Assembly: GCA_002269645.1 (NCBI GenBank)
Contig: NIVC01000472.1
Location: forward strand, 1-64,000
Direction: 5' to 3'
From: Macrostomum lignano
Taxonomy: Eukaryota
Length of the DNA stretch: 64,000 nt
In this document: piece after piece, positions 12,626 to 63,107 of the stretch
Layout: the number at the start of each line of letters is the position of its first letter
Position numbering within the stretch: the first letter of the stretch is position 1
Notes under the pieces: generated by a model
The model's input: the letters and a program-made list of their open reading frames with translations, nothing else
Told to the model about the DNA's origin: nothing
Databases searched by the model: none
Program-made: the position numbers and the translations under genes

Positions 12626-12674
<49 letters not shown>

Positions 12675-12689: not shown

Positions 12690-12742
<53 letters not shown>

Positions 12743-30139: not shown

Positions 30140-34414
<4,275 letters not shown>

Positions 34415-36289
34415 CTTCAATTTCTGTTGAAACAATTAGAATCTAAAAATTTTTAGTTCAAAAAATTGCCGCTAAAAATCCTAAAAAAACTTTTTTTTTA
34501 GTTGGCTTACCTGATCAATGGACAGAATTTGTACCGATTAAAAACGTAGAGTAGGAATATTTGCTTTTTTGCAAGCCTAAATCTTATATACTAAAAATCT
34601 TAAGCCTAAAGGTCTTTCTTATCGAATGGACTAATGGACTTATACCCAGATAGACTGGACGATCTTCATTTGGCAGAGAAAGCAAATGTCAATTCCAGTA
34701 CACACTCGGTGCTCTGAAAAACTTTAGTTAGCACGAGTTGAACGAGTGACACGACAGTGCCCACCGTTATCGCAATCAGGCAGCCGAAGCAACTGACTAT
34801 AGCTTACCCAGTCCACACAGCACAGACACTGTACTGCCAGTTCACTTTGAGGCAAGAAGTGCAAGACAGTCAGTTATCGCAAATGTCAATCCTCGACTTG
34901 ATTTAAAGTTCAAACTTATAGCTGGATAATTGCCTATGTCACGTGTGGTACGGCCGTTGTCTTGGAAAATACTTATTTTTGTGTTTGCACCAACGGCCAA
35001 CGTCCATCTAGCTGATACGCGTGTTTTAGCTACTGTTGTTTAATGAGTACATCAATATTTAAAAGTAATTGAGAAGTTAGGCTATATTTTCTGACTAATT
35101 TAATGAATGTGCGTACCTCACGAATACGACAAAAACTATGCCAATCAAATAATTGCCAACGTGTTTTGATGCTCTTTTCCAGTCATGCAAAAATGAGTCT
35201 TCACAGTCACAGATCGTCTTTTTGGCCACTCATGTCCAATGCAACAAAATTTACTAAATTTAAAAACACCACACTCCCTCTGGAGTGAGACACCACAACT
35301 TTAAATTTGCGCACTCACCTCTCACTTACGTAAAAGAGGGGTGGGTGCTGAGCACACGCGTACATGACTCAAAACTGGGGGTTGGGCGCTACAAATGTAC
35401 GGTACAAGATCGGTACAAAGCAAACAAAATATTCTAAATATTTTAAATAAAAGTAAATAAATATAACGTGTATTTTATGTAGTACATGGGTCGATTCCAA
35501 GTGCAGTCAGATTAATTTGTAAATAAGTATATTTTTATTTATTTATTTAGTCAACTTGACATACCTTCCAATTCCGAACTGCTTAAAAGTCAGGATTCCC
35601 GTCCGGAAAGCTAATTAAAAGAAACACTCATGTTAGTAACTTTTTGTGTATAATTATGCTCTAATTTTTTTAAAACTACTCTTTGTCTACTGTGTTAGTA
35701 GTATTCTTCTGTTTTTATGGTAGAAGTCCAACATTAGTCATATTCAAATAAGAATTCAACAAAGCAAAGTACATGTCAATTTGCAAAGACCAATTTTACT
35801 AAATTGGTACAAAAGTTTTATAGAAAAGTGGTGATTTTTTAAGAAAATCAGATTAGATAAATTTAAAAGTTGGTGTATTTGTAGTTAAAAAATCGATAGG
35901 GTTTAAACTGCGTTTTAGTTAAAATAAAAAAACTGGGAATGAGAGGGTTAAGCAAAAAATATCTGGGTAAAATTCAACACGGTTTTGTGACAATGTCACC
36001 AGGGTTCTTATGTCGCCAAACAGCCCCCCCCCCTACATCTTTTGTTTAATTTTTTGTTGACTTTTTATTCGGCGCTGTAGTTTGTTATAATTAAAAAAAT
36101 ATTAGAAGCAAAATAATATGAATATGGCAATCATATAATATATTATTACTAATTATTTCAAGTTCTTTTATAGCTAATATTTCGGTTATAGCGTCAATTC
36201 TGTGAAGAAGTGTTAGCACACGGTACATTTAAATTTTGTAATCAGTCTCTAAATAAGCAAACAGGCAGGGCAGGATTGGCACATTTCGG

Positions 36290-39200
36290 TCACTCGTCCT
36301 TCCCATTGGCTAGAAAAGTACTCAATGAGTCATCCATGGCGCTCATGAAAGGCGTGGTTGGAGGTGCGGCCAGTTTCCCGGTGAACTTGCTGACATACTG
36401 ACCGTCTCTGTAGGTGGTGATGTCCTCATCTCGACTATCGAACCACTTGTAGAACAGCTGGGACGCGTCAAGGTCGAAGCCATAATTAGCCTGTTTGGCC
36501 AGCCCAACCGTGTAATCCGTCTGAAGATCGACAGCTTCTTGGTGGCTTTTCAGCGCTGCCTCTCTGAAAAATGAAAGTTAACCAATTAAAATTCCAACAA
36601 CTGAGCGCATAAAAACGGGTGGACGTGTTGTACCCAAGCACGCACTCATACACTTCCTTCATGCTCACCGCTCCAGCCAAGGTTTCGTGTCGGCGTCCAT
36701 CTCGGCAGAACTTGGCAGCTGGATGCCGCCAGTCAGGTAACGAACTGTCCACAGCGCCTGTGCATCGAACATTGGGAAGCTGTAGAATTGGTTCTGAGCT
36801 CCCACATACATCAGGCGGTTGTTGCCACCAGCGAGCCAAATGATGCCTTTGTACAGTCCGGCCGGGTACAAAAGGTTCGGACCGCGAAGTCGCAGTTGCT
36901 CGGCCAGGTACGGGTAGTGATGCAGGTAGCCGGTGGCCAGAATGATGCAATCGATCTAAATTTAGGGGAACATGACAATTAGAAGGTCAGACCATTCATT
37001 TTAGGAACCGATAGAATTCATTGATCATTTGTTCGAGTCCATTTCTCTGACACAATTTTTAGGAAGTTATATTTGAAAAGTGCATTATTTGTTATAGTGA
37101 AACAACAGAAGTACATATAATTATCAAATAATGTCTGAGCCACTTTTTCAACTGCAAAATAAGACAATACAAGACTTCCAAGAAGCATATTGACAACCTT
37201 TTCCACCGAGCCATCAGCGAATCGAGCCCAGCCTTCTGTGCCTCCGCCGTCGCTTGGACCGACCTCCGTCACCAGGGGTCGCTCGGACACGCTTTCCGGC
37301 CAGCGAAATCCTAGCGGGTTGGTGCGGTAGCTGCTGATCACCCTGGAGGCGCCGAACTTGACTGACTGCAGCACCGAGTCCTCAGCTGAGTAGCTGGAGC
37401 CGACAACCAGCACCCGCTTGCCGGCGAATTCTCGCCAGCTGCGCAGGTCGTGCGTGTGCACCACGCGTCCTGGGAAGCGCTCGATGCCTGGATTAGATGG
37501 TCAATTATAGATAATTGAGAGGTTTTCTACAGATTCTCCATTCTAATTAAGATAAAATGTACTTTTAAACTAATTGAGCTGGGTTGTTTCGCGACTGTTT
37601 TTTCCTGCAGCCGTTGCAGGTACCCTAGCCTGTAGGTCATTGCGCCAACTGTAGCTGGAGCCCCGCAAAAAGCTGGAGCACAATGGAAGATATTCAGGCC
37701 GCACATTCATTTACACTACTAGACCCAGGTGAGTTAGCCCAATGCTTACTGCAGCAGAAAAGTAAGTATTGCTTTCCGATTTTTTTATTGCGTTGAGTTC
37801 CAACGCAGAGCTGCATATGGTGTAAGACTGTTTAGCTACTCACTGTGGCCGAGATCAGTAGCTAATAGACAAAGGCACTTCTTTCATTTCACTTAGTCGT
37901 TGGCCAGAGCAAGACAACGCGGGGCCATAAATTATATTTTATTGTTGAACAAACAGCCCGCTATAGCTTCAAGTGTCAGCCTGAAGGTAGACAGCACAAT
38001 AAAGCGTCTGAATAAAAAAATGAAATCATTCTTTGAAGGAGGGTTCGCTTACACAATCAAGTGAAGAGGCTGAGAGATTTAAAGCTGAGCTCTACGCTAA
38101 AATGACGCGTGGACGAGGCGCCAGCACCAGGGGCTTTAGCACCAGGGGCTTTAGCACCAGGGGCTTTAGCACCAGGGGCTTTAGCACCAGGGGCTTTAGC
38201 ACCAGGGGCTTTAGCACCAGGGGCTTTAGCACCAGGGGCTTTAGCACCAGGGGCTTTAGCACCAGGGGCTTTAGCACCAGGGGCTTTAGCACCAGGGGCT
38301 TTAGCACCAGGGGCTTTAGCACCAGGGGCTTTAGCACCAGGGGCTTTAGCACCAGGGGCTTTAGCACCAGGGGCTTTAGCACCAGGGGCTTTAGCACCAG
38401 GGGCTTTAGCACCAGGGGCTTTAGCACCAGGGGCTTTAGCACCAGGGGCTTTAGCACCAGGGGCTTTAGCACCAGGGGCTTTAGCACCAGGGGCTTTAGC
38501 ACCAGGGGCTTTAGCACCAGGGGCTTTAGCACCAGGGGCTTTAGCACCAGGGGCTTTAGCACCAGGGGCTTTAGCACCAGGGGCTTTAGCACCAGGGGCT
38601 TTAGCACCAGGGGCTTTAGCATCAGGGGTGCCAGCACCAGGGGCTTTAGCATCAGGGGCTTTAGCATCAGGGGTGCCAGCACCAGGGGCGCCAGCACCAG
38701 GGGCGCCAGCACCAGGGGCGCCAGCACCAGGGGCACCAGCACCAGGGGCGCCAGCACCAGGGGCGCCAGCACCAGGGGCGCCAGCACCAAGGGGCGCCAG
38801 CACCAGGGGCGCCAGCACCAGGGGCGCCAGCACCAGGGGCGCCAGCACCAGGGGCGCCAGCACCAGGGGCGCCAGCACCAGGGGCGCCAGCACCAGGGGC
38901 GCCAGCACCAGGGGCGCCAGCACCAGGGGCGCCAGCACCAGGGGCGCCAGCACCAGGGGCGCCAGCACCAGGGGCGCCAGCACCAGGGGCGCCAGCACCA
39001 GGGGCGCCAGCACCAGGGGCGCCAGCACCAGGGGCGCCAGCACCAGGGGCGCCAGCACCAGGGGCGCCAGCACCAGGGGCGCCAGCACCAGGGGCGCCAG
39101 CACCAGGGGCGCCAGCACCAGGGGCGCCAGCACCAGGGGCGCCAGCACCAGGGGCGCCAGCACCAGGGGCGCCAGCACCAGGGGCGCCAGCACCAGGGGC

Positions 39201-40380
39201 GCCAGCACCAGGGGCGCCAGCACCAGGGGCGCCAGCACCAGGGGCGCCAGCACCAGGGGCGCCAGCACCAGGGGCGCCAGCACCAGGGGCGCCAGCACCA
39301 GGGGCGCCAGCACCAGGGGCGCCAGCACAGGTTAACTCGGGGATAAAATATTGTATCTGTTGGATTTCGAAGCGCACCCCAGAGACTAGAGTCATCCTAC
39401 CTTTGAAGTAGGGCACATTAGGGTTGGAGAAGTGCCCGCTGCAGTTGACAACGTAGTCAAACTCTTTTGGATCAAGTACACGGTTTTGCTCCAGGTCCTT
39501 CACCAGCACACTGAACTTCTCCTTGGCTGGGTCGAAAGTCACGCTTTGAACCGAGTGTAGCAGAGTCACCTTGGGCTTCAGGTTGTACTGGTTCCAGCGG
39601 CCTGAAATTTGACAAGAAATTTCAATTAATTTAGTGTGTAATAACGTTTAAAGGTGATCTTTTAATACGCTGATACTGAATGAGCTCCGATACTTTCTAG
39701 GGCTGTAGGGTAAATTTAAACAAAAAAGCTCTCAAACTTTAAGAGTAAAAATGTCTAAGTCACACCTGCCGCAGGAAAATAACAATTATCATTAGATGGT
39801 TTAAACAAGCGCGCCAATACTGTACGCAGGCACGAACTCATACACACGCTCACACAGGGCGACCCAAAGCCAAACACGTCAGCGACTGAACTGCTTTGCC
39901 CCATTAACAAGTAGTAGAATACAAAATTGCAAAATTACAACCGGTTGAAAACCACTCAACTTCAACGTACCAGACAGATAGTCCCTAATCGCTTCTCTCG
40001 GCAGAAACGATGGTGTCTTACGACCGAAGTGCTGCTCAAAAGTATAGTCGGGATATTCAATAGTCTCCTTGGGGTTGTTGGACCACAGGCTGCGGTACAT
40101 GCTGCCGTGAACGGTTTCACCGTATTCGTCAGTGCCTGCAAAGGTTGAAACACTTGCGGTTGTATAGCACTGAAATAAAGTACATGTGGACCTACGCACC
40201 AGTTCTCCAGGTGTAGTTCCACAGACCGCTCCAGTCGTTCTGTTTCTCAAAGCAGGCCACCTGAGGCATTTCTCCAACAGCCCTGCCGCCTTGAAGCCGC
40301 AGCTTCTCCAGGTGGTAGAGCACCGACATTCCCGAGGGTCCGGCCCCGATAACGCAAAGTGATCTTTTGGCTGCCTGCAT
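36290..40380 (-). CDS. Flavin-containing monooxygenase, Tmm/mFMO-like, copy 2
   Basis: Six exons: 40380-40200, 40135-39971, 39601-39401, 37487-37198, 36955-36669 and 36563-36290. Intron positions and phases match copy 1, with the same motifs (WSNNPKE, GSSYSAED). Confidence 0.93.
38109..39329. repeat. 15-bp minisatellite in two blocks (GGCTTTAGCACCAGG then GGCGCCAGCACCAGG) in FMO copy 2 intron 3
   Basis: About 80 near-perfect units. It explains the RGFST, GRQHQ and GAPGA pseudo-ORFs. Confidence 0.97.
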
Positions 40381-41876
40381 CTTCTCTTTGTCTTTTTCCG
40401 AAAATAACAAGCTTAAATGAAACCCGTGGCATTGTGTTTTATTTTTATCCCGATGCTGCACCAAAAAAGTTGATAAAAAGTTAACGAGACAATTTAATAA
40501 TTTTTTTTTTCGATCAAGTCAAAAAACGCATTGTTTATCTTTTACAAAAAACGGAAGCAGCTTTTATATATCAAATTAAAATTAAAAACAAAAAATACAG
40601 TAAAAATTATTTTAGCAAAACTTATTGGTCAAAAATTGATTCGATGGTAGCTAAATTTTGCAGATAAAACAAAATTTATATTAATGGTCTTTGGGTGTTT
40701 TTCTTAATACGACAAAATCTATCATACAAGCGTATTAACAGTAAACGATAAGAATATATAAGTAGTTTTCGCTGCATTAAGAATAAATATTTAAGTAGAC
40801 TTATAACTGGAAAAGTAGAAAACGATTCATTCCATTGCATTAGAAAAATCGTGATATTTTATTTCAAAAAAATTATTTTAGAAAAAAATAATTTACCGCC
40901 ATTTTTGCATGCGCAATTTAACGATCGTCGTCTTATTTTTACAATGTAAAATGCGCCGCCTACAGCGAACAATATACCAGCTGGTACAAGCACAACGTGT
41001 GCACACAGATCAGACCACACTTAAGGGATTTTTACATCTGAAGTTGCTGATTTATACAAATACACGTATATTATAGCTACAGCTAAATTGAATAAATGGT
41101 ACTTAATGAGTAAAGATCTAAAGGCCAAAGGTTTTTCTACTCAATAGTTTTTGTCCGAGACGGGCTTAAACAAAAAAACGTTAAAAGTAAATTTTGTCAA
41201 TTTTTTGCAAATCTATTGCATAAAACATTTGCTATTTTTTAGCTTCTACCATTCCTGCTAACCTATTTTTTACACTTATCAGGTCAGTCTGACCCTGTGT
41301 GCTATCTGTGCATCGGCTTAGTATTTTTCGCTTAGCTAATTAAAATACGAGTTTGCGCAGTAAAGTGCTAATTAACTTTGCTAAATAAATTAAAGCCAAC
41401 GCCTAAGGTTCTAGAAAAAGTGGATAAAATAAATGCCTTTAGATTATACAAGGGGCCTATAGAATTTGATATTTAGACTTATTCAACATGAAAATAAAAT
41501 CTAGCTTTAAAAAGTACGATCTATTGAATTTAATTCTCACGAGACTTTTCTCTCATGAACTAACCTGAACTCAGTTCAGCAGACTGCTACTAGTGTGTTC
41601 AGTTCAGCTTAGGTTTAAAATGCCACGTGACATTAAGACAATTTAAAAAAAAAATCTTGTCTTTTTCAAATTTATTGCACTTAATTCTTACAATATAATA
41701 GTCAAATTTCATGCAGAACCCTGCAGTTGCTCAAAATGGCACCTGCAATGAGCTGCGCAGTTTCAATAAGGATAAGTCAATATATATGCAGCTTGTGTAG
41801 GGCCGAGCTAAGCAGCACTTCTAAACAGTTTAAAAAAATATTCAGTTAGTCTGTAGCCCTGTAATATAGCCTCTCG

Positions 41877-43139
41877 ATGATTCCGGTGAGTTTTCCTGCA
41901 GCTTATACAACCATTTTTAATAGCTAAAATTAGTTGCTTTGGCTAATTGAAAAGAAGCCAACGTCCAATTGACCCACTTATTGAGCCTCAAACTGGCTTG
42001 TATGTACATTCCGCAACATGTTCATGTGTGCACCCCGAAACTACAGTGACCAAAGAGTGGCAGCTTTTAATCCAACTCATAGTCGTAATCTAACTTTCAT
42101 TCAGTACAGCTCTTCTTGCGATACCTAGTGAAATCAGTAAACAAAGCCGATTGCAAACGTTACATTCAGACCGAGAAAAATGGATCGAGAGGGTGGGAGA
42201 GACTAGAAAGAGTGAATCGAGTGCACAAAAATACTCATAAAAATATTCATTGCTTGTCTACTCGGCTCTGTGAAATTGCAGTTACATGCACTGGCAGCAG
42301 GCGTCCTGTGCGCTGCCCTGGCACTATGCGCAAGCGCCAATGAAGACCTGATGCACCGGCGCTGCTCTGCCCAGTGGACTCTGGTGGCCACGCACCAGAA
42401 CTGGAGCCCGAAACCAACTGAGAAATCGTTTCACTATCAAGTGGGCGCGCACAAGCTTCAAAACTCCCGGAACTTACTGAAGTCCATTCTAGTGACAGTC
42501 AAAGACGATGGGATGCGATTCCCATCTACAGCTGCCGGCATAGGTACTCCGAGTACTAAATATGGCACTTTTAAAGTTCCAGCCTATGCGACCGTCAATG
42601 TTTGGCAGCTGGTTGCTCGAACAGGCAGCGAGGTTGCGAGCCTTGAGAAAACGATCGCTCTCAGAGATCAACGAAAGCCGTATTCAGTAGTATCTTGCCA
42701 AGTCACTTACCAGCTGCCGCAGCGCATCACTGGCAACACCTGGGTGCAGCTCAGGCACGACGGCACCGGAAAGTACTTGACAACCACCAACAGAAAGGGT
42801 TGGGACGCTGGGACGCTGAGCTCAAGCAAGAACAACAAGTTTAGATTCGAGGAGATCAGATCGGGTGTCTACAGAATAGTTGCCGACTCAGTCCGTTTCT
42901 CTGGATACAATTACCTGTACTCCTCCTTTGCCGGGGGCATCTATTTGGATGATAGCGACACCTCAAACGGGAAGCAGCTCTGGACGCTGAGCACCAGCGA
43001 CCTGAGAGCCGGAGACTCCATCGCCATCGAGAATGTGTACTACCCCGGTGCCTACATGATCAGGTACGAAGGCTCAACTACCAATGTGTTCTGCGAGTAC
43101 ACGAGCCACCCAGACTATTGGACTGTTGAACTGGCCTGA
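41877..43139 (+). CDS. Secreted lysenin-like protein 1 (aerolysin-type N-module + beta-trefoil)
   Basis: Micro-exon ATGATTCCG (41877-41885, gtgagt donor) splices in phase 0 to 42282-43139, giving signal peptide MIPLHALAAGVLCAALALCASA. C-terminal RKGWDAGTL, FSGYNYLYSSFAGGIYLD, KQLW, LRAGD and TNVFC match lysenin as I recall it (RKSWPAATL, YSGYEYAYSSDQGGIYFD, KQRW, LRHGD, TNVYC). Confidence 0.85.
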
Positions 43140-43689
43140 TCCAACAATTACTGAATTAACGAATTAACAATCGTACACAACACGGGCTGAATTCTAATAT
43201 GGTCGATTTTCCTAGATTTTTATTTTATAGAATCTTTAGGCAAAATAATTAGTAATATCTACAAAGACGTTCGAACCTTTTTCTGAAACTCTACCGGATT
43301 ATTTTTGTTTCATCCAAATAGCATACGTTGCAGGTACAGAAATTATTTGCTTCACCCTCACTGTTCGAATAACCAAATAAATGAGCAATTTAAAACCGCT
43401 ATGGATGTTTGGCGTAACCGAAACAAAACGCTGCATGTCTTGTCTTCCACTTTTCAGTAGAGAGAATGGGAAATTTCCGTCAGATCCTACGGCGCAGCTG
43501 CATCAGCGGTTTCGCTCTTAAATGAGTCGCCATCTGAGAGTTTGACAGGCAATTTTGTTGCTGAGTTCGTTCGGCCTTCGTTAACTACTTTTCCCAGAAG
43601 TGCACCATGTGACACTGACTTCTCAAGACCCTGACGAGTATTTTTTTGTTGTTGTTGAAAGCAAGCTAAAACTCAGTCAACAAGGCTGT

Positions 43690-43970
43690 CAGGGCTGAGG
43701 TCAGTGTCGGGGCTGAGGGGTGTCAGGGCTGAAGTGTGTGGGGGCTGAGGGGTGTGGGGGCTGAGGGGTGTGGGGGCTGAGGGGTGTCGGGGCTGAGGGG
43801 TGTCAGGGCTGAGGTGTGTGGGGGCTGAGGCCGGTGTCAGGGCTGAGGTGTGTGGGGGCTGAGGGGTGTCGGGGCTGAGGCCGGTGTCGGGGCTGAGGGG
43901 TGTCAGGGCTGAGGGTTTCAGGGCTGAGGGGTGTCAGGGCTGAGGGTTTCAGGGCTGAGGGGTGTCAGGG
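43690..43970. repeat. About 18-bp G-rich minisatellite (GGGCTGAGGGGTGTCAG-like)
   Basis: Variant tandem units between the two lysenin-like genes. Confidence 0.88.
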
Positions 43971-44382
43971 CACAAATTTACTTATGTTTATTCTTAAGTC
44001 TGGTTAATGTGAGCTTAAAGATAGAGTACCAGAAACAAGTCAGTCGATTTTCGCGCAAAATTTTTAACCATTTAGAAATCCGCATCTCAGAGCTGCAGAA
44101 CTGCAGAACCAGAATTGACAGGTTCCAAACTAGTTTTAGTTATGAAAACTTGCTAATAATAAAATTTGTTGATCTGTTATTAGTGTTATTCGATAGTCAG
44201 GGCCTCTCTTTAAACTGTTTACATTTAATTTAAATAAACTAATGTTAATATCTGAAACTAAGTTTAGTCAGCCCCAAGCCGATAATTCAATCTAAGATAT
44301 AAATTCTTTAAATTCGTGCCTCTCCGGCTTTGGAGTTCCGCAAACTTTGTACCCAGCATCCGACGTTCTTCATCGCTCCGAA

Positions 44383-45676
44383 ATGGTTCGAGTAAGTGCG
44401 CTAACTTTTTGTTTGAATCATATAATACTCAGTTATATTTTATAGATAACAAATTATTAATGTTCAAGCATACCTGCAGTTAAAATTTGCATTCCTGTTC
44501 TTTTTAAATTTGTTTTAGTTTTGGAAGTCACGTTGTTAGCATTTTGCAGCAAAACAAGATCTGAGTTCATTCGATTTTGTTTGAATTTGTCAAATTAAAC
44601 CATATTAAAAACTTGAGTATTAAAGAGTGACAAGGTTAAACTATTCTTAGATAAAAATGATAAAACAGAAAGTAAGAAAAGAAACCTATTTAACGTTGTG
44701 TGCCTTGAAGACGTGACTGAGTCATTGTAGCAAGATTAGAGGGGTGACCATATTTACCATTGCTTTTCATCATTTCATATTTACAAAAATTCTCCAGGCG
44801 CTCAGCCTCCTGGCCCTGTGCGCTCTGGCGATATGTACATCTGCCGAAGCCGCAGGCGACACGGTATCCAAATCGTGCAGTGCTCAATGGACGCTGGTTG
44901 CTACGCTGGAAAATTCTCAAAAACGAGCAGTTCTGCACAATTTTCACCACCATGTCGGGTTGCGCAGCCTGCACAATGCTCATAAAGTCCCTTGGGAGAC
45001 TTTGATATCGATTTCGGTGACCACCCAGATCCTTGGCGACCCTCATGGAGTGTCGGAATTTATTTCCACCAATCTCGGACGTCCGAGAGCGACACTCGGA
45101 TCCGTGCTTGTCCCAGCAAAGTCGGTCGCCAAAATCTGGCAGCTTGTTGTCCGCACCCACGGCGAAGTCTTTAAATTCCGAAGAACGAAATCGGTCAGAG
45201 GGTCGCAGAGCCCGCCACCGATTCTGTCCTGCCACGCGTCTTACCAAGTGAAGAGACGCATCACGGAGCAATCTTGGGTGCACTTGAAGCACGAAAGCTC
45301 GAATATGTATTTGGTAACCACTAACAGAAGAGGCTGGGACGCCGGCACGCTGGGGTCCTCAGCTAGCAACAAGTTTCGCTTTCAACAAATCAGGCCAGGT
45401 ACCTACAGGATCGTTGCCTACTCATACAGGTTCAGCGGGTACAGGTATCTTTACTCGTCCATGGCCGGTGGGATCTACCTAGACGACAGCGACTTGTCGA
45501 ATGAGAAGCAGCTGTGGACGCTGGATAGAACTGATCTGAGAGAGGGTGACTCGATCGCCATCCAGAATGTGTACTACCCCGGAGGATATATGATTAAATA
45601 CGAAGGCTCAACTACCAATGTCTTCTGCGAGTACACTAACTACCCAGACCGTTGGATTGTTGAACTGGCTGACTGA
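44383..45676 (+). CDS. Secreted lysenin-like protein 2
   Basis: Micro-exon ATGGTTCGA (44383-44391, gtaagt donor) splices in phase 0 to 44798-45676, giving signal peptide MVRALSLLALCALAICTSAEA. It is a clear paralogue of copy 1 (RRGWDAGTL, FSGYRYLYSSMAGGIYLD, KQLW, LREGD, TNVFC). Confidence 0.85.
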
Positions 45677-46084
45677 TATACGAGTATTTAGTCTCTAAAC
45701 TGGTAACTTATGACGTCAAATCAATGATTATAAGATTTTCTGTTTAAACCAGACACTTTCGACTTGTATGAATCAGAATTTTAATAATAAATACGCACCC
45801 CACTCTTTACTTATAGAAAATCTTACAAAGCGTTAACTACAATTTATCTACAAATATTTCTGGACCTGAAACTACTAACAGTAGCGTGAAAGCATATTTG
45901 TGTTGCCCCTTAAGCTAGGCCATATTATATTATCATAAAAATCGAAATACCAGCTTAGAGCTTCACATTTATTCAGTATTTCAGTGTTCAATACAATATG
46001 CGCTCCATATGCCATTTACTTTAGAAACTTTACCTGCTTTGTTTAAATTAGTAAGTTTTTGCAAGACTACATAAATATTATGAT

Positions 46085-47531: not shown

Positions 47532-48189
47532 GGTGCGGCCATAAATCAATCAAAATCGCAACAAAATGATTTATGACTTTTCGCGTAGGATTGACAGAAA
47601 TTAATGAAAAAAATACACTAGAAAGCTCTTATTAAATAGAAGGTGAAGATAATGAAGAGAAATCGCTAATCGCTAATCCCAAAGTACTTTTAGGGGTAAA
47701 ACGCATAGCTGTCAAAACTGTCACACGCTTGAGTGAACCCGAACCATAGGCTCTGACCTCATAAATCTTGATGGCCTGTCAAAATGATGAGAAAAAAGCT
47801 ACCGCCCGCATCCTCTCAGACCATCTGGCGCCCGCCTCAACACTGAGTGAGGCGCAGGTGGCTGTCAGACCAGCTTCGAAAGCGATGATTTATGACCCAA
47901 AAAGCTGCGCCTACGTTATTATGACTACTAGTATGACCAAACATTATATCTAGTATAGATTCTATGACTATTCGCAGAAAAAGGATAAAAATGCCCACTG
48001 CCCACTGTTAGTAGGCTAGTAAGTTTAGAGCCCAGTGCTAGCGCGGGGTTTGGAAAAAAGTGCGTCCTCATCAATTATTAAAAATTTTCTGCTACCATTT
48101 TATTTTTAATTAACTCTCCTATAGAAATAAATTTTCGTTCATGAGTTAAACTTGTCAGATGGAAATGATCGATCAGTAGTTTATTGTGC

Positions 48190-48906
48190 TGAGCGCCGAG
48201 TGTCGAATGTCGAGTGTCGAGCATCGAGTGTCGAGTGTCGAGTGTCGAGTGTCGAGTGTCGAGTGTCGAGTGTCGAGTGTCGAGTATCGAGTGTCGAGTA
48301 TCGAGTGTCCAGTGTCCAGTGTCGAGTGTCGATTGTCGAGTGTCGAGTATCGAGTGTCGAGTGTCGAGTGTCGAGTGTCGAGTGTCGAGTATCGAGTGTC
48401 GAGTATCGAGTGTCCAGTGTCCAGTGTCGAGTGTTGATTGTCGAGTGTCGAGTATCGAGTGTCGAGTGTCGAGTGTCGAGTGTCGAGTGTCGAGTATCGA
48501 GTGTCGAGTGTCGATTATCGAGTGTCGAGTATCGATCGAGTGTCGAGTGTCGATTATCGAGTGTCGAGTATCGATCGAGTGTCGAGTGTCGAGTATCGAG
48601 TGTCGATTATCGAGTGTCGAGTATCGATCGAGTGTCGAGTGTCGAGCATCGTGTGTCGAGTGTCGAGTGTCGAGTATCGATCGAGTGTCGAGTGTCGAGT
48701 ACCGAGTGTCGAGTGTCGATTATCGAGTGTCGAGTGTCGATTATCGAGTGTCGAGTGTCGAGTGTCGAGCATCGAGTGTCGAGTGTCGAGTATCGAGTGT
48801 CGAGTGTCTAGTATCGAGTTTCGAGTGTCGAGTGTCGAATGTCAAGCATCGAGTATCTAGTGTCGAGTGTCGAGTGTCGAGTGTCGAGTGTCGAGTGTCG
48901 AGTATC
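48190..48906. repeat. 7-bp CpG-rich microsatellite (TCGAGTG)n
   Basis: About 100 units with variants. Confidence 0.96.
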
Positions 48907-49279
48907 GAGAATGCTCGTAGCTGGTATTTTGTTAACGCAATTCAACGCAGTAACTGCTTTGTGAATCAAACTAGGAGCATATTTTCAAACTTTCACTAAC
49001 ACAGGTTTTGTTGGTAGTTACTCGTACTTCAGTTTTGAACCTACGCTCTGCGAACTCTGCGCATGCAGAGTGCACGGAGACAGAAAACCTGCCGGTTTTG
49101 ATCAAAGATCAAAGCATACCTTCAACGAATTTAGTACACGATATAACTTTGTATTCGTTGGTGTGCATTAGAAATACAGATTTCATATTTTTGAAATTTT
49201 TTAATTGTCCATACATGCTAATAAAGCAGTCTGAACTGTGACCACTCCAGCACACACTGGTGTCTGACTCGGGATCCTT

Positions 49280-50493
49280 TATTCCCTATTCCTTATCCAT
49301 TATCCCTTATCCCCTATCCTTTATCCCTTATCCATTATCCCCTATCCCTTATCCATTATCCACTATAACCTATTCCATATCCCTTATCCATTATCCCTTA
49401 TCCCCTATCCTTTATCCCTTATCCATTATCCCCTATCCCTTATCCATTATCCACTATAACCTATTCCATATCCCTTATCCTTTATCCCCTATCCCTTTCC
49501 CCTATCCCTTATCCTCCATCCCTTATCCTTTATCCCCTATCCCTTATCCTCTATCCCTTATCCTTTATCCCCTATCCTTTATCCCCTATCCCTTTCTCCT
49601 ATCCCTTATCCTCCATCCATTATCCTTTATCCCCTATCCCTTTCCCCTATCCCTTATCCTCCATCCCTTATCCTTTATCCCCTATCCCTTATCCTCTATC
49701 CCTTATCCTTTATCCCCTATCCTTTATCCCCTATCCCTTTCTCCTATCCCTTATCCTCCATCCATTATCCTTTATCCCCTATCCCTTTCCCCTATCCCTT
49801 ATCCTCCATCCCTTATCCTTTATCCCCTATCCCTTATCCTCTATCCCTTATCCTTTATCCCCTATCCTTTATCCCCTATCCCTTTCTCCTATCCCTTATC
49901 CTCCATCCATTATCCTTTATCCCCTATCCTTTATCCTCTATCCCTTATCCTTTATCCCCTATCCTTTATCCCCTATCCCTTTCTCCTATCCCTTATCCTC
50001 CATCCATTATCCTTTATCCCCTATCCTTTATCCCTTATCCATTATCCCCTATCCCTTATCCATTATCCACTATAACCTATTCCATATCCCTTATCCTTTA
50101 TCCCCTATCCCTTTCCCCTATCCCTTATCCTCCATCCCTTATCCTTTATCCCCTATCCCTTATCCTCTATCCCTTATCCTTTATCCCCTATCCCTTTCTC
50201 CTATCCCTTATCCTCCATCCATTATCCTTTATCCCCTATCCTTTATCCCCTATCCCTTATCCCCTATCCCTTATCCATTATCCACTATAACCTATTCCAT
50301 ATCCCTTATCCTTTATCCCCTATCCCTTTCCCCTATCCCTTATCCTCCATCCCTTATCCTTTATCCCCTATCCCTTATCCTCTATCCCTTATCCTTTATC
50401 CCCTATCCCTTTCTCCTATCCCTTATCCTCCATCCATTATCCTTTATCCCCTATCCTTTATCCCCTATCCCTTATCCCCTATCCCTTATCCCT
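49280..50493. repeat. TATCCYY 7-mer satellite with higher-order structure
   Basis: Built from tatcccc, tatccct, tatcctt and tatccat units. The marker ccactataacctattccata recurs at about 49360, 49450, 50065 and 50280. Confidence 0.95.
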
Positions 50494-50495
50494 TA

Positions 50496-50932
50496 CTGAG
50501 TTGAACCAAAAGTCCGTGCGCTTTTTGTATGCACATTTTTAGGCGCTTATTATTTCTCTCATGAACAACATGCATAATCAAGTGACGTCTCATTCGAAAG
50601 AGCATATTTTGCCGAACCAAACCACGCATGTTTTAATTCTGGTAAATATTTCCAGCCACTGTCAGCTCTACTGAAATGAGTGCTACCAGTCGCGATAATC
50701 TCGCTATTCTGCGACATTACTGGAAGCTCGGCTTCACAGCAACGGACGCAGCTCAAAAGATTCGCGAAACTGAAGGGCAGGATGCCCTTCAGGACAGAAC
50801 AGCACAGAAGTGGTACCAGCGCTTTTCGAGTGGCGACACGAGCCTCGAAGTTCGGCCACGTTCTGGTCGACCTACCGACCTATTCTGTCTATTTTAAGTC
50901 AGAAAAACGCACGAACTTTTGGTTCACCCTAA
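50496..50932 (+). mobile_element. Internally deleted mariner element (437 bp)
   Basis: About 30-bp TIRs (CTGAGTTGAACCAAAAGTCCGTGCGC / TTAGGGTGAACCAAAAGTTCGTGCGT) flanked by TA on both sides. ORF 50676-50897 is a mariner N-terminal HTH (ATDAAQKIRETEG...RTAQKWYQRFSSGDTSLEVRPRSGRP). There is no catalytic domain. Confidence 0.92.
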
Positions 50933-50934
50933 TA

Positions 50935-51300
50935 TCCCTTATCCCTTATCCCCTATCCCTTATCCCCTATCCCTTATCCCCTATCCCTTATCCCCTATCC
51001 CTTATCCTCTATCCCTTATACCCTATCCCTTATCCCCTATCCCTTATCCCCTATCCCTTATCCTCTATCCCTTATCCCCTATCCCTTATCTCCTATCCCT
51101 TATCCCCTATCCCTTATCCCCTATCCCTTATCCTCTATCCCTTATCCCCTATCCCTTATCTCCTATCCCTTTCTCCTATCCCTTATCCCCTATCACTTAT
51201 CCCCTATCCCTTATCCCCTATCCCTTATCCCCTATCCCTTATCTCCCTCTCTTTTCCCCATTCCTTATCCCCTAGCCTTATCGCTTATCCCTTTCCCATA
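50935..51300. repeat. TATCCYY satellite, continuation right of the mariner
   Basis: Same unit and strand as 49280-50493. Confidence 0.95.
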
Positions 51301-51792
51301 TTTTAAACTACCCGTACGACTTATTTGGTGAATAACAAAATTTTGACGCAAATATTTAAAGATATTAAAATCATGCAGTTTCTTAAGGTTCGCTCGAATA
51401 CAATACTTATAAGGCGTTCGTTTCGTTAATTCGTTTGTCTAGCCATGAGTGCATTAGTGGTCAATGCCGAATTTCCCCATAACCAATGCAGTAAGTGCCA
51501 AAATTTGCTACTGAAATGAAAAATGCTTTTTAGTCAGCAAACAAAGTGACTTTCTGAAGCATTGATTGCCACCAGTTAGACAGTGACTGAGCGAGCAGAA
51601 ACCGAAAGATTAATAGAAAATAAAAAATTATACTTCTCAATCACCACGAAACTAAAGGACGCTGCAAAAGTTTCTTTCAAAAAGCTTATGTCAAATTCAA
51701 AATTGCTTTACCTGATTTAGCTTCCTCCTTTGTAAACCGTAGCGACACTTGTGAAGATCAAATGACAAAAGTTAGTTCGGTTTTTAGTTTAT

Positions 51793-52700: not shown

Positions 52701-53991
52701 AAGTGAAGTACATGTAGACAACTGCGAGTACAACCAAGGGACAATTCTAAACTTCCAGCATCAGATATTTACTGAAGAATAAATAACCAGTGACTGCATT
52801 AGCACGAGACAATGTCCCATGTTAAACGTCATGCTTGTATGTAAATTTGGCTTAAATTTATTTGCATAAAAATGCCATAGATACTATCTGCCTACCGAAT
52901 GGAGACAGAAGCTTTCAAATAATGTAATTGGCTGGTTTCACCCGCCTCAAATGTCAAACTAGCGGGACTGTGCCCAGAGCAAATACTAGATTGGGAGATA
53001 AAGGTTCTGAGTTTTCCTCAGTCATCATGCAGAATCCAGTTTGGAAAATATTACTCACGGGGATTCTGGGATTTGCATTTTAACACTTCAATGAAATTCG
53101 CCACCTTCGTGCAGGTAGGTGGATCTGTTTCTCTGATGTAATAAATTGTAATTAATGAAAGCTACTTACTGCTGACATTAGCAACTACGAGCTAGAATGC
53201 TCTGTGAAACTTTCAGCTCTCCGTGCTGCTCACGGTGGCAGTTTTCGGTGTTCAAACTAGCGGCGACACTTCTGTCAGCTGCCAGAAGACCGAAAGCTTG
53301 CGCCAATGCAGCTTTGACACCAGCTGGAGAGATTTCCAATCTAGCGGGGAATCGAGCTTGGCGCACTTTGTCACCCGGTGCGAGCTGGCCGGCTGCCCCG
53401 ACACCTCAGCGGTCACCAGCAACCGCGAAGTGTTTCGGCCAATGAAATCAACTACCACGGCAGCAACACTGCATGTGGCAGTAGAAAACCCGAAGGGCGA
53501 TTCTGACCCAGTGTTGTCATCGGATGTGTCAGCCTCATAGAGTTGCTGCTGCAGATGGCACCGAATGGGTAAACTCAATTTAAAGCAGTCACTAGTGATT
53601 GGCAACTCTCAAGTATGAGCCTGTATGACTATCAATCCAGTGTATGAATATTAATGAGCTCGATATATTTAGTCCAGAAGCCACATGGCTTTGTAAATTA
53701 TTTGCCTCCGCAGGAGGTGAAGCGTCTATAGAAATAAATCGAAGTATATTCAAGAGAAAATAAGCTAATCCAGACGTCGTGTTTAGGCCCCTCTGGATGA
53801 TGGTGAGCTTCTATACTTGTATGAGTCCTAAAGTGAAATTATTCCCTTATAACCATAATGACTAACTATAATTTAATCATCTCAGTTCATGCATCCAGTT
53901 ACTCTGCTATGTCTATTTAGGATCCCAGATGAACGGCTTGGAAGAAAATTTTAGGATATTATGATATTGCACGCACTGTACTTAACCATGT

Positions 53992-54808
53992 TCTGGGTTG
54001 GGTGCTCAGGGTGGTTGCTGGGTTGGGTGCTCAGGGTGGTTGCTGGGTTGGGTGCTCAGGGTGGTTGCTGGGTTGGGTGCTCAGGGTGCTTGCTGGGTTG
54101 GGTGCTCAGGGTGGTTGCTGGGTTGGGTGCTCAGGGTGCTTGCTGGGTTGGGTGCTCAGGGTGGTTACTGGGTTGGGTGCTCAGGGTGGTTGCTGGGTTG
54201 GGTGCTCAGGGTGGTTGCTGGGTTGGGTGCTCAGGGTGGTTGCTGGGTTGGGTGCTCAGGGTGCTTGCTGGGTTGGGTGCTCAGGGTGGTTGCTGGGTTG
54301 GGTGCTCAGGGTGGTTGCTGGGTTGGGTGCTCAGGGTGCTTGCTGGGTTGGGTGCTCAGGGTGGTTGCTGGGTTGGGTGCTCAGGGTGCTTGCTGGGTTG
54401 GGTGCTCAGGGTGCTTGGTGGGTTGGGTGCTCAGGGTGGTTGCTGGGTTGGGTGCTCAGGGTGCTTGCTGGGTTGGGTGCTCAGGGTGGTTGCTGGGTTG
54501 GGTGCTCAGGGTGCTTGCTGGGTTGGGTGCTCAGGGTGGTTGCTGGGTTGGGTGCTCAGGGTGGTTGCTGGGTTGGGTGCTCAGGGTGCTTGCTGGGTTG
54601 GGTGCTCAGGGTGGTTGCTGGGTTGGGTGCTCAGGGTGGTTGCTGGGTTGGGTGCTCAGGGTGGTTACTGGGTTGGGTGCTCAGGGTGGTTGCTGGTTGG
54701 GTGCTCAGGGTGGTTGCTGGGTTGGGTGCTCAGGGTGGTTGCTGGGTTGGGTGCTCAGGGTGCTTGCTGGGTTGGGTGCTCAGGGTGGTTGCTGGGTTGG
54801 GTGCTCAG
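53992..54808. repeat. 25-bp minisatellite (CTGGGTTGGGTGCTCAGGGTGSTTG)
   Basis: About 32 tandem units. Confidence 0.96.
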
Positions 54809-54829
54809 GCTGAAAGAGCGCTGAAAGAG

Positions 54830-55430
54830 GTTGAGAGTGCGGGGTTCACCGTCAGATAAGACGTGAAGCGCAGAGGTCGGCGTGGGGCAGAAGCTTGCGC
54901 TTAGCCATGGCCCTATGGGGCAGGATACGAATGTCAGCGTCAATCAGACGGCGGGAAGTCTTAGCCGCATACCTGCGGACAAGATGTCCAGCGGAGGAAT
55001 GTTGAGGAAGGCGTTGAGGCCATCGTAAGGAGCAGACGGAGGGGCGCTCATGATCATGCGACATGCGCGCCCTTGCGTTCTCCTGAGAGCCTCAAGGCAG
55101 GTCTTTATCTGCAGGGCGCCAGCCCAGATCAGGCCGCCATACGAGATAGCAGGCCTAACCATTGCAGTGTCGATCCACCAGAGGCGCTTGGGGGTGAGAC
55201 CCCAGGTGGTGCCGAAGGCTAGGTGCAGCTGCGCGAGGACTGCGAGGGCTTTCTTGGCTTTTGCTTCAACTTGGGGCGACCAGTTGAGCCTGAGGTCCAG
55301 GGTAATACCGAGACATTTAGTCTGCTTGCAGAAGGGGATTTCCCTTCCGTAAAGCGTGAGCGGCCGAGTCTGCCACTTGGTCCTGCTGGTGAACATGATC
55401 GCTGCGGTCTTAGTCTCAGAGAGCCTTAAT
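54830..55430 (-). mobile_element. Non-LTR retrotransposon fragment, RT C-terminus/thumb (I/LOA/R1-like)
   Basis: KCLGITLDLRLNW..VEAKAKKA...TWGLTP..LWWI.TAMVRPAISYG..IW...QGRACRMI. Confidence 0.85.
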
Positions 55431-55560: not shown

Positions 55561-56326
55561 GCCCAGAGTTGGTGCCCGCTATGCGATGCGGAAAGGCTGC
55601 ACAAACGTGGCGGGAAGAAATGACAGCAGACAAAGTCACCAGTCCTCAACAACACAAAGTGATCGATTACCTGATGCATGCACCCTTGTGCCATTGGCGT
55701 ATCAGACGTCTTCTTTGACAATAAATTGACGTTTTCTTTGCGATGCCACTCAATTTATTATAGACGAAATCCAAATAATACACAGATACTACACAAATCT
55801 CTCAATGAAAATATAAAATTAAGCTATACTCGAATAGTTGGTAAACGGATTGTTCAAATTTGAAACTATGTTCCAATTACTCTTAACTAAAGTCCATTTA
55901 GTGGCGCTTGCAATGTCCTTTGGCAGGTATACTTCCAATCTGATTGATTGGTAAATTCAAAATAAGCAATAACTGACGACAACGATGGGGTTTGGGACAT
56001 GCACAATCCGATAACAAAAGGATCTTTGAGCTACTCGAAAATCAGATAAATGATTCTAATTAGGCACGTATGTGATTGATTTTTTAAATAAATTTTTAAA
56101 CACCATAATCCTCAACATTTGTAAAGTTTTTTTCACTTTCAATGAAATACTCGTAAGCTGCACAATATTCAATCAACTAGCAATAGCGCACGCGGTTACA
56201 ATAGTACGTGCTAGCAATTAAAAATAAGCAAGTTACCAATAAAAAGTTTGCAGCAAATAGCAATACAACTAGTGTCCCCCATTCCTTATCAATTATCCCA
56301 TATCCCTTATCCCCTATCCCCTATCA

Positions 56327-57923: not shown

Positions 57924-58445
57924 CCCTATCCCTTATCCTCTATCCCCTATCCCTTATCGCCTATCCCCTATCCCTTATCCCCTATCCCCTATCCCTTATC
58001 CCCTATCCCCTATCCCTTATCCCCTATCCCCTATCCCTTATCCCCTATCCCTTATCCCCTATCCCTTATCCCTTATCCCCTATCCCCTATCCCTTATCCC
58101 TTATCCCCTATCCTTTATCCCTTATCCCTTATCCCTTATTCCTATCTCTTATCCCTTATTTTTATCCCTTATCCCATATTCCTATCTCTTATCCCTTATC
58201 TCCTATCCCTTATCCCTTATTCCTATCTTTTATCCCTTATCTCCTATCCCTTATCCCTTATTCCTATCCCCTATCCCTTATCCCCTATCCCCTATCACTT
58301 ATCCCCTATCCCCTATCACTTATCCTCTATCCCCTATCTCTTATCCCCTATCCCCTATCCCTTATCCCCTATCCCCTATCACTTATCCTCTATCCCCTAT
58401 CTCTTATCCCCTATCCCCTATCCCTTATCCCTTTTCCCTTATCCT
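57924..58445. repeat. TATCCYY satellite
   Basis: Same family as the 49-51 kb arrays. A short left part lies at 56280-56326. Confidence 0.95.
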
Positions 58446-63075: not shown

Positions 63076-63107
63076 TCTGTACCGTAATACGGTACGGCGA
63101 ATTCTGA

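Follow-up and report, generated by a model that had tools for sequence, protein, structure and literature searches.

Two adjacent genes of the flatworm Macrostomum lignano were found to be members of the lysenin family over both of their domains, an assignment that we regard as solid. Specifically, each encoded protein consists of a signal peptide, an N-terminal module homologous to the aerolysin-type pore-forming module of lysenin, and a lysenin-type beta-trefoil at the C-terminus. Our preferred reading, to which we attach a probability of roughly 55%, is that these are two functional, anciently duplicated lysenin-family genes encoding secreted defensive or offensive cytolysins. As far as could be found, lysenin-family membership in a flatworm is unpublished. 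The searchable literature describes the family from lumbricid earthworms only, and a genome paper reports it to be missing even in the annelid Enchytraeus.

Gene structure, secretion signals and selection at the tandem locus

The window analysed here is the whole stretch of bases 1-64000 (64,000 nucleotides) of M. lignano contig NIVC01000472.1, which bears out the suggestion of an earlier note on this DNA that its source was a non-annelid, probably a flatworm. The two genes lie in tandem on the + strand, as do all features given below unless otherwise indicated, with gene 1 at 41877-43139 (288 aa) and gene 2 at 44383-45676 (295 aa), and a tblastn search of the window returned exactly two copies. 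The first exon of gene 1 (41877..41885) consists of the three codons ATG ATT CCG (Met-Ile-Pro) followed by the donor GTGAGT, and is separated by a 396-nt, phase 0, GT...AG intron ending in TTGCAG (41886..42281) from exon 2, which includes the stop codon (42282..43139). Gene 2 has an exon 1 of ATG GTT CGA (Met-Val-Arg) with the donor GTAAGT (44383..44391; exon and donor are the same at both homeologous loci), a 406-nt, phase 0, GT...AG intron ending in CTCCAG (44392..44797), and an exon 2 that again includes the stop codon (44798..45676). The intron position is identical in the two genes, each intron being ~400 nt long. No in-frame ATG precedes the signal peptide within exon 2 of either gene, and gene 2 has its first internal Met at residue 173, so that the 3-codon mini-exon is required.

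Outside the coding sequence, pattern matching provided candidate TATA-like motifs 96 nt 5' of the gene 1 ATG (TATATAT, 41781..41787) and 85 nt 5' of the gene 2 ATG (TATAAAT, 44298..44304), together with candidate AATAAA poly(A) signals 237 nt past the gene 1 stop (43376..43381) and 110 nt past the gene 2 stop (45786..45791), also pattern matches only. An intergenic minisatellite with the 16-nt unit TGTCAGGGCTGAGGGG spans 17.6 copies (43687..43971, no strand). A bacterial promoter and terminator scan, of no relevance to a eukaryotic locus, showed no enrichment. With respect to existing annotation, the spliced product of gene 1 is a 100% match to PAA82408.1 / BOX15_Mlig014210g2 (P0001), an M. 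lignano protein from an annotation built purely from RNA-seq (PMC5730564). It was deposited as a hypothetical protein, a label repeated in its three copies.

In terms of secretion, the signal peptides continue after exon 1 up to 42338 in gene 1 and up to 44845 in gene 2. Their hydrophobic cores reach mean Kyte-Doolittle values over 10 residues of 2.8 and 3.0, compared with 1.2 for lysenin, and small residues then occupy positions -3 and -1 (ASA before N in gene 1, TSA before E in gene 2). The spliced models and this N-terminal sequence test both agree with the earlier description of two paralogues, each having a 3-codon first exon and a signal peptide. By the same test, the lysenin/LRP clade has no signal-peptide-like N-terminus, and so the contention that the signal peptide sets these proteins apart holds with respect to lysenin and the LRPs. 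It does not extend to the family as a whole, however, because two members of the wider lysenin family, P0019 and P0046, also have a signal-peptide-like start. To judge from these N-terminal sequences, the lack of a signal peptide describes the Eisenia clade and does not define the family.

The two proteins are 57% identical overall, with values of 73% for the C-terminal domain (~138 aa, in line with the conserved domain of about 135 aa first noticed) and 35% for the N-terminal domain. At the nucleotide level the C-domain coding part alone aligns (74.8%), and comparison of the gene 1 and gene 2 units revealed no non-coding similarity; with alignment so limited, the extent of the original duplication is untraceable. 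Between the paralogues omega is 0.28 (dS 1.35, saturated), with 0.18 for the trefoil and 0.35 for the N-terminal module. Moreover, three homeologous loci each carry the pair intact and in tandem beside the same FMO-like gene, on contigs of 92, 558 and 676 kb with the same arrangement. Omega among the homeologs is 0.12-0.30 for both genes and 0.14-0.23 for gene 2 alone. The start codon, donor and acceptor of gene 2 are kept at all three loci, the sole indel among its homeologs is of two in-frame codons in a loop, and one copy (L012) has Y at the position of lysenin W187. Both genes are under purifying selection.

These observations bear on two rival accounts. The first, in which one or both copies are decaying, functionless duplicates, gene 2 being the likelier candidate, draws on the fact that gene 2 has no annotation at any of the three loci and no entry in the protein collection searched, and on the lack of any mention of Mlig014210 in the full-text literature or in the supplementary tables of M. 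lignano papers searched for expression. Nonetheless, both reading frames have stayed intact despite synonymous saturation, and the low omega values, the retained start and splice sites and the single in-frame indel of gene 2 across its three loci render decay very improbable. The second account, in which the DNA is not of flatworm origin or was acquired horizontally in recent times (a contaminant from an annelid, say, or a toxin gene from a bacterium), we consider more improbable still. It would fit the very patchy named distribution of the family (Eisenia and M. lignano only), and lysenin-like fragments do occur as contaminants in bacterial assemblies. Against it stand the spliceosomal GT-AG introns of both genes, the three homeologous copies arranged alike beside the FMO-like gene, the identity of only 25-29% to every other family member, from which the flatworm pair is set off as its own deep branch, and the finding of no two-domain bacterial relative among 1.84 billion representatives.

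Homology to lysenin across both domains

When the two proteins were compared with all PDB sequences using phmmer, lysenin was the sole match (E 3.4e-21 for gene 1 and 1.3e-23 for gene 2), the alignments starting at the IPP/WQL block and reaching the C-terminus. AlphaFold models of the pair (pLDDT 82.9 and 86.5) cannot count as wholly independent of lysenin, since relatives of lysenin sat in the input alignment, and the lysenin structures also predate AlphaFold2 training. With these models, Foldseek ranked the lysenin monomers 3ZXD, 3ZXG and 3ZX7 first, over ~290 columns, with TM scores of 0.59-0.75 and E values of 1e-20 to 1e-19. The next non-lysenin matches were trefoil-only, covered the C-terminal half and were ~15 orders of magnitude weaker (E>=2.6e-5). 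The earlier note had allowed that the N-terminal half might prove to have no lysenin fold, or that the C-terminal similarity might be no better than to generic trefoils; the fit found here is end to end, and the trefoil-only matches are far behind.

The N-terminal module homologues (42339-42725 in gene 1, 44846-45259 in gene 2) were also analysed by themselves. Scored with an HMM built without flatworm sequences, the N-terminal halves alone reached 17.7 and 12.5 bits, as compared with a best score of 9.3 in 4000 shuffles, and hhalign of the N-terminal halves alone gave 91.8% probability (E 7.2e-7, 121 columns). Within this region the motifs W-x5-[QE]N...G and VP-x6-WQL, which had been likened to lysenin before, prove to be real, conserved alignment columns, namely W20, N28, G43, P108, W116 and Q117 in lysenin numbering. 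All five tryptophans common to lysenin, LRP-1 and LRP-2 (W20, W116, W187, W245 and W291; PMC3760042) are present in both flatworm proteins, and the non-conserved lysenin W206 is replaced by R. The lysenin-type trefoils (42726-43136 in gene 1, 45260-45673 in gene 2) likewise align with lysenin block by block, as had been proposed; the common blocks are R-K/R-x-W, SGY-x-Y-x-YSS, GGIY-x-D and KQ-x-W, and further GD, TNV-F/Y-C and D-x-W-x-x-E. Taken together, the phmmer, Foldseek and hhalign results are specific over both domains and uphold the lysenin-family identity first suggested for the pair.

A Pfam scan of both proteins returned nothing above threshold: gene 1 matched RicinB_lectin_2 at 16.7 bits, short of the 25.6-bit cut-off, and gene 2 had no match to it. 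This null result is uninformative, since lysenin itself has no Pfam hit. The sub-threshold match and the many trefoils in the Foldseek list are what could be said for a reading in which the pair are ricin-type beta-trefoil lectins of a generic kind, the N-terminal extension is unrelated and the likeness to lysenin is superficial. This is the least probable account of all. A generic ricin-type identity is ruled out by the lysenin-only sequence match in the PDB, by the full-length structural fit (trefoil-only structures cover half the protein), and by an N-terminal half that is homologous to lysenin on its own, and Pfam is in any case blind to lysenin. No aerolysin-family structure besides lysenin occurs among the best 50 Foldseek matches listed, and there is no Pfam ETX/MTX2 or aerolysin hit. 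Because lysenin has no Pfam hit either, the aerolysin-type assignment of the flatworm pair rests on published structural work, in which the N-terminal module of lysenin is a member of the aerolysin structural superfamily (PMC3526787).

Lipid-contact residues and a shortened barrel hairpin

With respect to lipid recognition, the phosphocholine pocket of lysenin is formed by K185, S227, Y233 and Y282 with Q229 as a gate, and its sphingomyelin site by K21, Y24, Y26, Q117 and E128 (PMC3526787). At the former, the flatworm proteins have K or R in place of K185 and retain S227 and Y233; Y282 is replaced by F and Q229 by A in both. Of the sphingomyelin-site residues, one in five is kept (Q117), the others being changed to T (K21), A (Y24), H or L (Y26), and S or K (E128). 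This site, which sets the specificity of lysenin, varies in the wider lysenin family too. In lysenin, binding and lysis are almost gone in a Y24A/Y26A double mutant (PMC3526787). Owing to the replacement of the sphingomyelin tail platform, the flatworm pair, as read from these residues, probably differs from lysenin in lipid specificity.

A second feature concerns the barrel hairpin, which in lysenin spans V34-I107 (74 aa). Its equivalent is 54 aa long in gene 1 (residues 49-102; 42417..42578) and 61 aa in gene 2 (residues 48-108; 44930..45112), and is hence 13-20 residues shorter than that of lysenin, whereas 13 of 16 other family members have hairpins of 73-78 aa. The missing residues fall in and just after the tongue, a region that, according to De Colibus et al., bears an additional hairpin and a 3-10 helix specific to lysenin. 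In the lysenin pore, the tongue (M44-G67) lies within V34-I107, and V54-S86 alone protrudes below the cap, by ~4 nm (PMC4865846). Linear scaling, which assumes a lysenin-identical cap, gives a protrusion of ~1 nm for gene 1 and ~2 nm for gene 2, so that with the same cap geometry the barrel would be too short to cross a bilayer. The combined Ser and Thr content of the hairpin is 0.18-0.20 in the flatworm pair and 0.31 in lysenin, and amphipathic alternation is partial. The short hairpin and the replacement of K21, Y24 and Y26 are the largest differences from lysenin, and neither appeared in the earlier note.

Given this short hairpin, pore activity is in real doubt, and the main competitor of a cytolysin role is that the proteins are secreted lysenin-fold binders of membranes or of lipid or glycan headgroups that have lost the pore through truncation of the insertion hairpin, acting for instance as an opsonin, a lectin or an adhesion factor, or arresting in a prepore-like state. 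We take this seriously while holding it to be doubtful. It is favoured by a hairpin length well below a strongly conserved family norm, by the small scaled protrusion, by conservation that is much stronger in the trefoil than in the N-terminal module, as seen in both identity and omega, and by a phosphocholine pocket mostly retained where the sphingomyelin tail platform is gone. On the other hand, purifying selection (omega ~0.3) continues to act on the N-terminal module and the hairpin, and the three homeologous copies of gene 2 hardly differ in their hairpin, which holds a plausible strand-turn-strand (LISISVTTQIL-GDPHG-VSEFISTNL). W20 is retained, as are the blocks of the collar sheet on which oligomerisation depends, and the geometric argument presumes a cap identical to that of lysenin.

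For the preferred cytolysin reading, we infer toxin, effector or pore activity along the following lines. The protein would be secreted by the classical pathway, and its trefoil could then dock on a foreign membrane, where the largely conserved pocket would receive a lipid headgroup of the phosphocholine type or a related one. With the rigid twisted sheet as their contact surface, monomers would assemble into oligomers, and the tongue, which lies between beta3 and beta7, would unfold into a beta-hairpin contributing to a barrel, the putative end product being a secreted defensive or offensive cytolysin. Membrane perforation is the least secure part of this model, given a barrel that would fall well short of lysenin's in length.

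The lysenin family and related systems

When 1.84 billion representatives were searched exhaustively with a profile, the gene 2 query being the exon 2 translation, only 27 proteins reached E<=1e-3; those of full length have the lysenin-type two-domain form. The LRP-1/2/3 clusters were recovered in this way, as were lysenin-like proteins. A further search with a 19-sequence profile returned 4 proteins, adding little beyond P0045 and P0046. Two giant bacterial Ig-repeat proteins, P0012 and P0033, were judged to be spurious or repeat-driven matches to a short strand segment and were set aside.

Lysenin is in wide use as a sphingomyelin probe and as a nanopore scaffold. Natural variants with a short hairpin and an altered lipid-contact surface bear on the part played by hairpin length and by the Tyr24/Tyr26 platform in pore formation and lipid specificity. 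A conserved flatworm branch under selection makes the lysenin family older and wider than the literature says. Extending this, one might suppose that lysenin is one twig of an old, patchily kept family (spiralian or wider) whose flatworm branch is classically secreted, has the shorter hairpin and acts unlike the 10-nm lysenin barrel, a proposal that we consider speculative and on balance unlikely. If true, the flatworm branch could be a non-lytic sensor of membranes or lipids, or a much shorter pore with another lipid receptor, such as an invertebrate or microbial sphingolipid instead of sphingomyelin. In practical terms, a candidate secreted cytolysin sits in a model flatworm capable of transgenesis and RNAi, so that a biological role in defence, prey handling or immunity is testable in vivo. 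The annotation is also corrected for one 'hypothetical protein' gene and one missed gene, each in three copies.

Among known systems, the same domain order as in the flatworm pair is found in lysenin of Eisenia fetida (O18423; monomer 3ZXD/3ZX7/3ZXG, nonameric pore 5EC5/5GAQ), LRP-1, LRP-2/fetidin and LRP-3, at 24-28% identity and with a size of 297 aa as compared with ~270 aa for the mature flatworm proteins. Unlike lysenin and the LRPs, the flatworm pair has a classical signal peptide, a 54- or 61-aa hairpin and altered sphingomyelin contacts. It also differs from lysenin in a conserved pair of additional cysteines (C30 and C148 in gene 2), its 3-codon first exon, and its origin in Platyhelminthes rather than Annelida. 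The other relatives come from transcriptome or metatranscriptome contigs (SRR23076769-82, SRR27386368, ERR7672947 and JGI 3300032168). P0008-P0011, P0014, P0015, P0018, P0019, P0028, P0045 and P0046 are full-length two-domain proteins with 25-29% identity to the flatworm pair; the hairpin of P0008 is short too (62 aa), whereas those of the remaining transcriptome-contig relatives measure 73-78 aa.

The lysenin-type trefoil also occurs as a module in a MACPF fusion (P0021), a beta/gamma-crystallin fusion (P0023) and a Bacteroidota protein (P0030), which share with the flatworm pair the pattern GW-x-x-G-x-LG ... GY-x-Y-x-YSS-x-x-GGIYF-D ... KQ-W-W ... GD-x-V ... W-x-I-x-L. With another pore-forming partner or none, these are domain relatives and not whole-protein relatives. 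Aerolysin, epsilon-toxin, parasporin-2 and LSL are linked to the flatworm pair via lysenin, with no direct sequence or Foldseek match listed. By analogy with this family, the expected common mechanism would consist of binding, oligomerisation and the unfurling of an insertion loop to form a beta-barrel. The receptor-binding trefoil is C-terminal in both the flatworm pair and lysenin, unlike in LSL.

Gene structure and products of the tandem pair

Coordinates in the window, which coincide with those of the record (Macrostomum lignano contig NIVC01000472.1, assembly GCA_002269645.1, first 64 kb), place two long + strand open reading frames (ORFs) at 42270-43139 and 44744-45676, and in neither is there an in-frame ATG before the hydrophobic N-terminal segment. 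Both genes possess a 9-nt mini-exon ~400 nt upstream of the main ORF. Specifically, that of gene 1 lies at 41877-41885 (+; ATG ATT CCG, donor GTGAGT) and that of gene 2 at 44383-44391 (+; ATG GTT CGA, donor GTAAGT), with exon 2 beginning at 42282 (+; acceptor TTGCAG, then TTA) and 44798 (+; acceptor CTCCAG, then GCG), respectively. The intervening introns are 396 nt (gene 1) and 406 nt (gene 2), each in phase 0 after codon 3. Once spliced, gene 1 encodes a 288-aa protein with the same sequence as PAA82408.1 / BOX15_Mlig014210g2 (UniProt A0A267G8R5, "Uncharacterized protein"), and because the M. lignano annotation was made solely from RNA-seq-derived transcripts (PMC5730564), gene 1 and its mini-exon are RNA-supported. 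Gene 2 (295 aa) carries no annotation and is absent from a 5.8-billion-cluster protein collection.

Both N-termini are signal-peptide-like, with a hydrophobic core followed by an AXA-like site, and cleavage is predicted after A22 (gene 1) and A19 (gene 2). The same N-terminal analysis revealed no comparable segment in lysenin or the lysenin-related proteins (LRPs). The two proteins are 57% identical overall, with 35% identity in the N-terminal domain and 73% over the C-terminal 138 aa, and they represent exactly two lysenin-like copies within the 64-kb window. The earlier note had described a tandem pair with 3-codon first exons, signal peptides and a conserved C-terminal domain of about 135 aa, and the ORFs, splice sites, N-termini and C-domain identity confirm every detail of that description. 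Both proteins also keep a cysteine pair that is absent from lysenin (C31/C142 in gene 1, C30/C148 in gene 2), one member lying in the N-terminal strand that precedes W20 and the other in the strand that runs into the C-terminal beta-trefoil; this pair may form a disulfide, as expected of a secreted protein.

Assignment to the lysenin family

When each protein was searched with phmmer against all PDB sequences, lysenin was the sole match (E 3.4e-21 and 1.3e-23), the alignment extending from the VP...WQL block through the C-terminus. Neither flatworm protein has a Pfam match above threshold, and the "hypothetical" label is explained by the fact that Pfam misses even lysenin itself. When 1.84 billion cluster representatives were searched exhaustively in HMMER with a two-protein profile, only 27 proteins reached E≤1e-3, about a dozen of which are full-length lysenin-like two-domain proteins on short transcript-like contigs; the named relatives recovered were lysenin, LRP-1, LRP-2 and LRP-3, all from Eisenia fetida.

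AlphaFold2 yielded confident, all-beta models for mature gene 1 (pLDDT 86.5, pTM 0.70) and mature gene 2 (pLDDT 82.9, pTM 0.66). In Foldseek comparisons with the PDB, lysenin monomers ranked first (~290 alignment columns, E 3e-21 to 6e-19, TM 0.58-0.75), followed by lysenin pore protomers (TM ~0.5, a value to be expected given their refolding), and the remaining matches covered only the trefoil, with E values of at least 2.6e-5. As the AlphaFold2 input alignment contained lysenin relatives, the N-terminal half was also tested purely at the sequence level. An N-terminal-module HMM from which the flatworm proteins had been left out scored them at 17.7 and 12.5 bits, versus 9.3 for the best decoy among 4000 shuffles, and profile-profile alignment of this region gave 91.8% probability (E 7e-7, 121 columns). 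Taken together, the phmmer results, the full-length Foldseek matches and the N-terminal homology uphold the proposed family membership: the lysenin fold extends through the N-terminal half, and the C-terminal similarity is better than that to generic trefoils. The gene 1 and gene 2 products are therefore lysenin-family members, and in a neighbor-joining tree they form a separate deep branch with 25-29% identity to all other members.

With respect to other relatives from the database searches, P0019 and P0046 (loci L003-L010; runs SRR23076769-82 and SRR27386368) constitute a separate lysenin-like clade and share the signal-peptide-like N-terminus, which is thus not unique to the flatworm pair. 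The lysenin-type C-terminal trefoil was also found without the lysenin N-terminal module (P0020-P0023, P0025, P0026, P0029-P0032). P0021 joins it to a MACPF domain (PF01823, E 8e-30) and P0023 joins it to a beta/gamma-crystallin domain; P0020, P0022, P0025, P0029, P0031 and P0032 are small secreted proteins that carry a GWPHGRLG motif. Bacterial examples are P0030, a Bacteroidota MAG protein (MCZ6595998.1), and P0026, on a 97-kb metagenome contig. This distribution suggests a mobile membrane-targeting module common to two different pore-former superfamilies. The partial "bacterial" proteins P0058-P0061, from Hyphobacterium sp. SN044 and Erythrobacter sp. SN021, fall in the 90%-identity cluster of lysenin/LRP-2 (that of P0002); their contigs measure just 329-529 bp, so these proteins almost certainly reflect contamination of the assemblies concerned.

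Homeologous loci, selection and genomic surroundings

Three proteins of M. lignano make up the 90% cluster of gene 1: Mlig014210g1, g2 and g3, on 676-, 92- and 558-kb contigs, in keeping with the hidden polyploidy already known for the DV1 line (PMC5730564). The two other homeologous loci, L012 and L013, hold the same tandem pair, ~1.2-1.3 kb apart and downstream of the same flavin monooxygenase (FMO)-like gene. At each of these loci gene 2 encodes an intact 293-aa protein, its mini-exon (ATGGTTCGA/GTAAGTGC) and acceptor (TTCTCCAG) are unchanged, and it again lacks annotation (L012 12459-13736, L013 12494-13778); the L012 copy has Tyr in place of Trp at the equivalent of lysenin W187.

By the Nei-Gojobori method, dN/dS (omega) among homeologs was 0.12-0.30 for gene 1 and 0.14-0.23 for gene 2. 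Between the two genes, dN was 0.38 and dS 1.35 (saturated), for an omega of ~0.28, with values of 0.18 in the C-terminal and 0.35 in the N-terminal domain. Gene 2 copies differ in length only by a 2-codon in-frame loop indel. At the nucleotide level, the gene 1 and gene 2 units resemble each other only in the C-domain coding region, and the duplication is therefore old. An intact tandem pair at three homeologous loci, low omega and an old duplication together render a pseudogene, contamination or recent transfer very unlikely.

Part of the spacer between the genes, which measures 1244, 1194 and 1323 nt across the three loci, is filled by a G-rich minisatellite at 43687-43971 (16-nt unit TGTCAGGGCTGAGGGG, 17.6 copies, 85% matches). 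Upstream of the pair, two FMO-like genes occupy ~31877-40400 (-), one of them spanning a very large coding-frame-neutral minisatellite (38033-39569). An ankyrin-repeat ORF at 26840-27619 (+) is followed by two further ORFs, the last of which (28310-29503, +) matches Mab-21_C at 24.4 bits versus a threshold of 24.1; the region 26840-29503 may correspond to a single gene that combines ankyrin repeats with a Mab21/cGAS-like nucleotidyltransferase-type part. An uninterrupted 693-aa ORF at 58439-60520 (-) contains two tandem DNase II domains (PF03265, E 1.9e-89, 3 stretches). Reverse-transcriptase (RT) fragments lie at 14707-15963 (-; RVT_1) and at 54944-55396 and 63058-63690 (both -), the latter two resembling non-LTR RT tails. 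Long minisatellites are present at 8333-8984, 12255-12810, 17453-19009, 25891-26603, 48152-48999, 49260-51306, 53961-54859, 56248-56871, 57886-58628 and 61793-63250.

Functional sites, barrel hairpin and comparison with lysenin

Published functional sites (PMC3526787, PMC3760042) were placed on the lysenin sequence (UniProt O18423). W20, which is required for fold, oligomerization and lysis (PMC3526787, PMC3760042), is retained in the flatworm proteins along with N28, G43, P108 and W116-Q117, as are all five Trp residues conserved in lysenin and the LRPs. In the phosphocholine pocket, K185 is Lys in gene 1 and Arg in gene 2, and S227 and Y233 are unchanged, whereas Y282 is replaced by Phe and the gate residue Q229 by Ala. 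The sphingomyelin site on the pore-forming module is altered at four positions (K21 to T, Y24 to A, Y26 to H or L, E128 to S or K). Since the Y24/Y26 platform is replaced, and sphingomyelin binding and pore formation are almost abolished in a Y24A/Y26A double mutant of lysenin (PMC3526787), lysenin-like specificity should not be assumed; sphingomyelin bound in the lysenin manner is probably not their target.

In the lysenin pore, V34-I107 (74 aa) refolds to one long hairpin of the 10-nm barrel, and V54-S86 alone protrudes below the cap, by ~4 nm (PMC4865846). With the invariant G43 and P108 columns as anchors, the equivalent hairpin measures 54 aa in gene 1 and 61 aa in gene 2, versus 73-78 aa for 13 of the 16 remaining family members. 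The relative P0008 independently possesses a short hairpin (62 aa), and the trait is thus not unique to the flatworm. The missing residues fall within and just after the tongue (M44-G67), a region whose extra beta-hairpin and 3-10 helix were described by De Colibus et al. as lysenin-specific elaborations (PMC3526787). Linear scaling from lysenin, assuming its cap geometry, would give barrels of ~7 nm (gene 1) and ~8 nm (gene 2), of which ~1 and ~2 nm would remain below the cap. The hairpin Ser+Thr fraction is 0.18-0.20, versus 0.31 in lysenin. With a hairpin that is both short and Ser/Thr-poor, we rate pore formation by the flatworm proteins at no higher than about even odds. The short hairpin speaks for the main rival reading, in which the end state is a non-perforating membrane-bound assembly or lectin-like binder; this is a real possibility that we hold only tentatively, given that the gene 2 hairpin offers a plausible strand-turn-strand (LISISVTTQIL-GDPHG-VSEFISTNL) and that the segment is under purifying selection (omega ~0.3), being nearly invariant among homeologs, including the gene 2 copies.

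In terms of mechanism, both proteins combine a secretory N-terminus with the lysenin-type two-domain architecture, purifying selection on both domains, a conserved trefoil whose phosphocholine-type pocket is for the most part retained, and conserved collar-sheet landmarks. Following secretion, the trefoil would dock onto a lipid headgroup of a foreign membrane, after which the docked proteins would oligomerize and the tongue would unfold toward the membrane. The best explanation, to which we assign a probability of roughly 0.55, is that this ends in a shorter transmembrane barrel and that the protein is a cytolysin.

Full-text searching found no literature link of lysenin to Macrostomum or any flatworm, and papers using the terms lysenin-like, lysenin-related or lysenin family treat the family solely as one of earthworms such as Eisenia and Dendrobaena. 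The flatworm sequences were already public though uncharacterized, with gene 2 unannotated; what is new is a branch of the family in a flatworm, with classical secretion, a short hairpin and an altered lipid site. The pair is thus a clean, somewhat surprising phylogenetic extension of the lysenin family, not a new kind of system, and provides a mechanistically informative natural variant of it in a tractable model organism.
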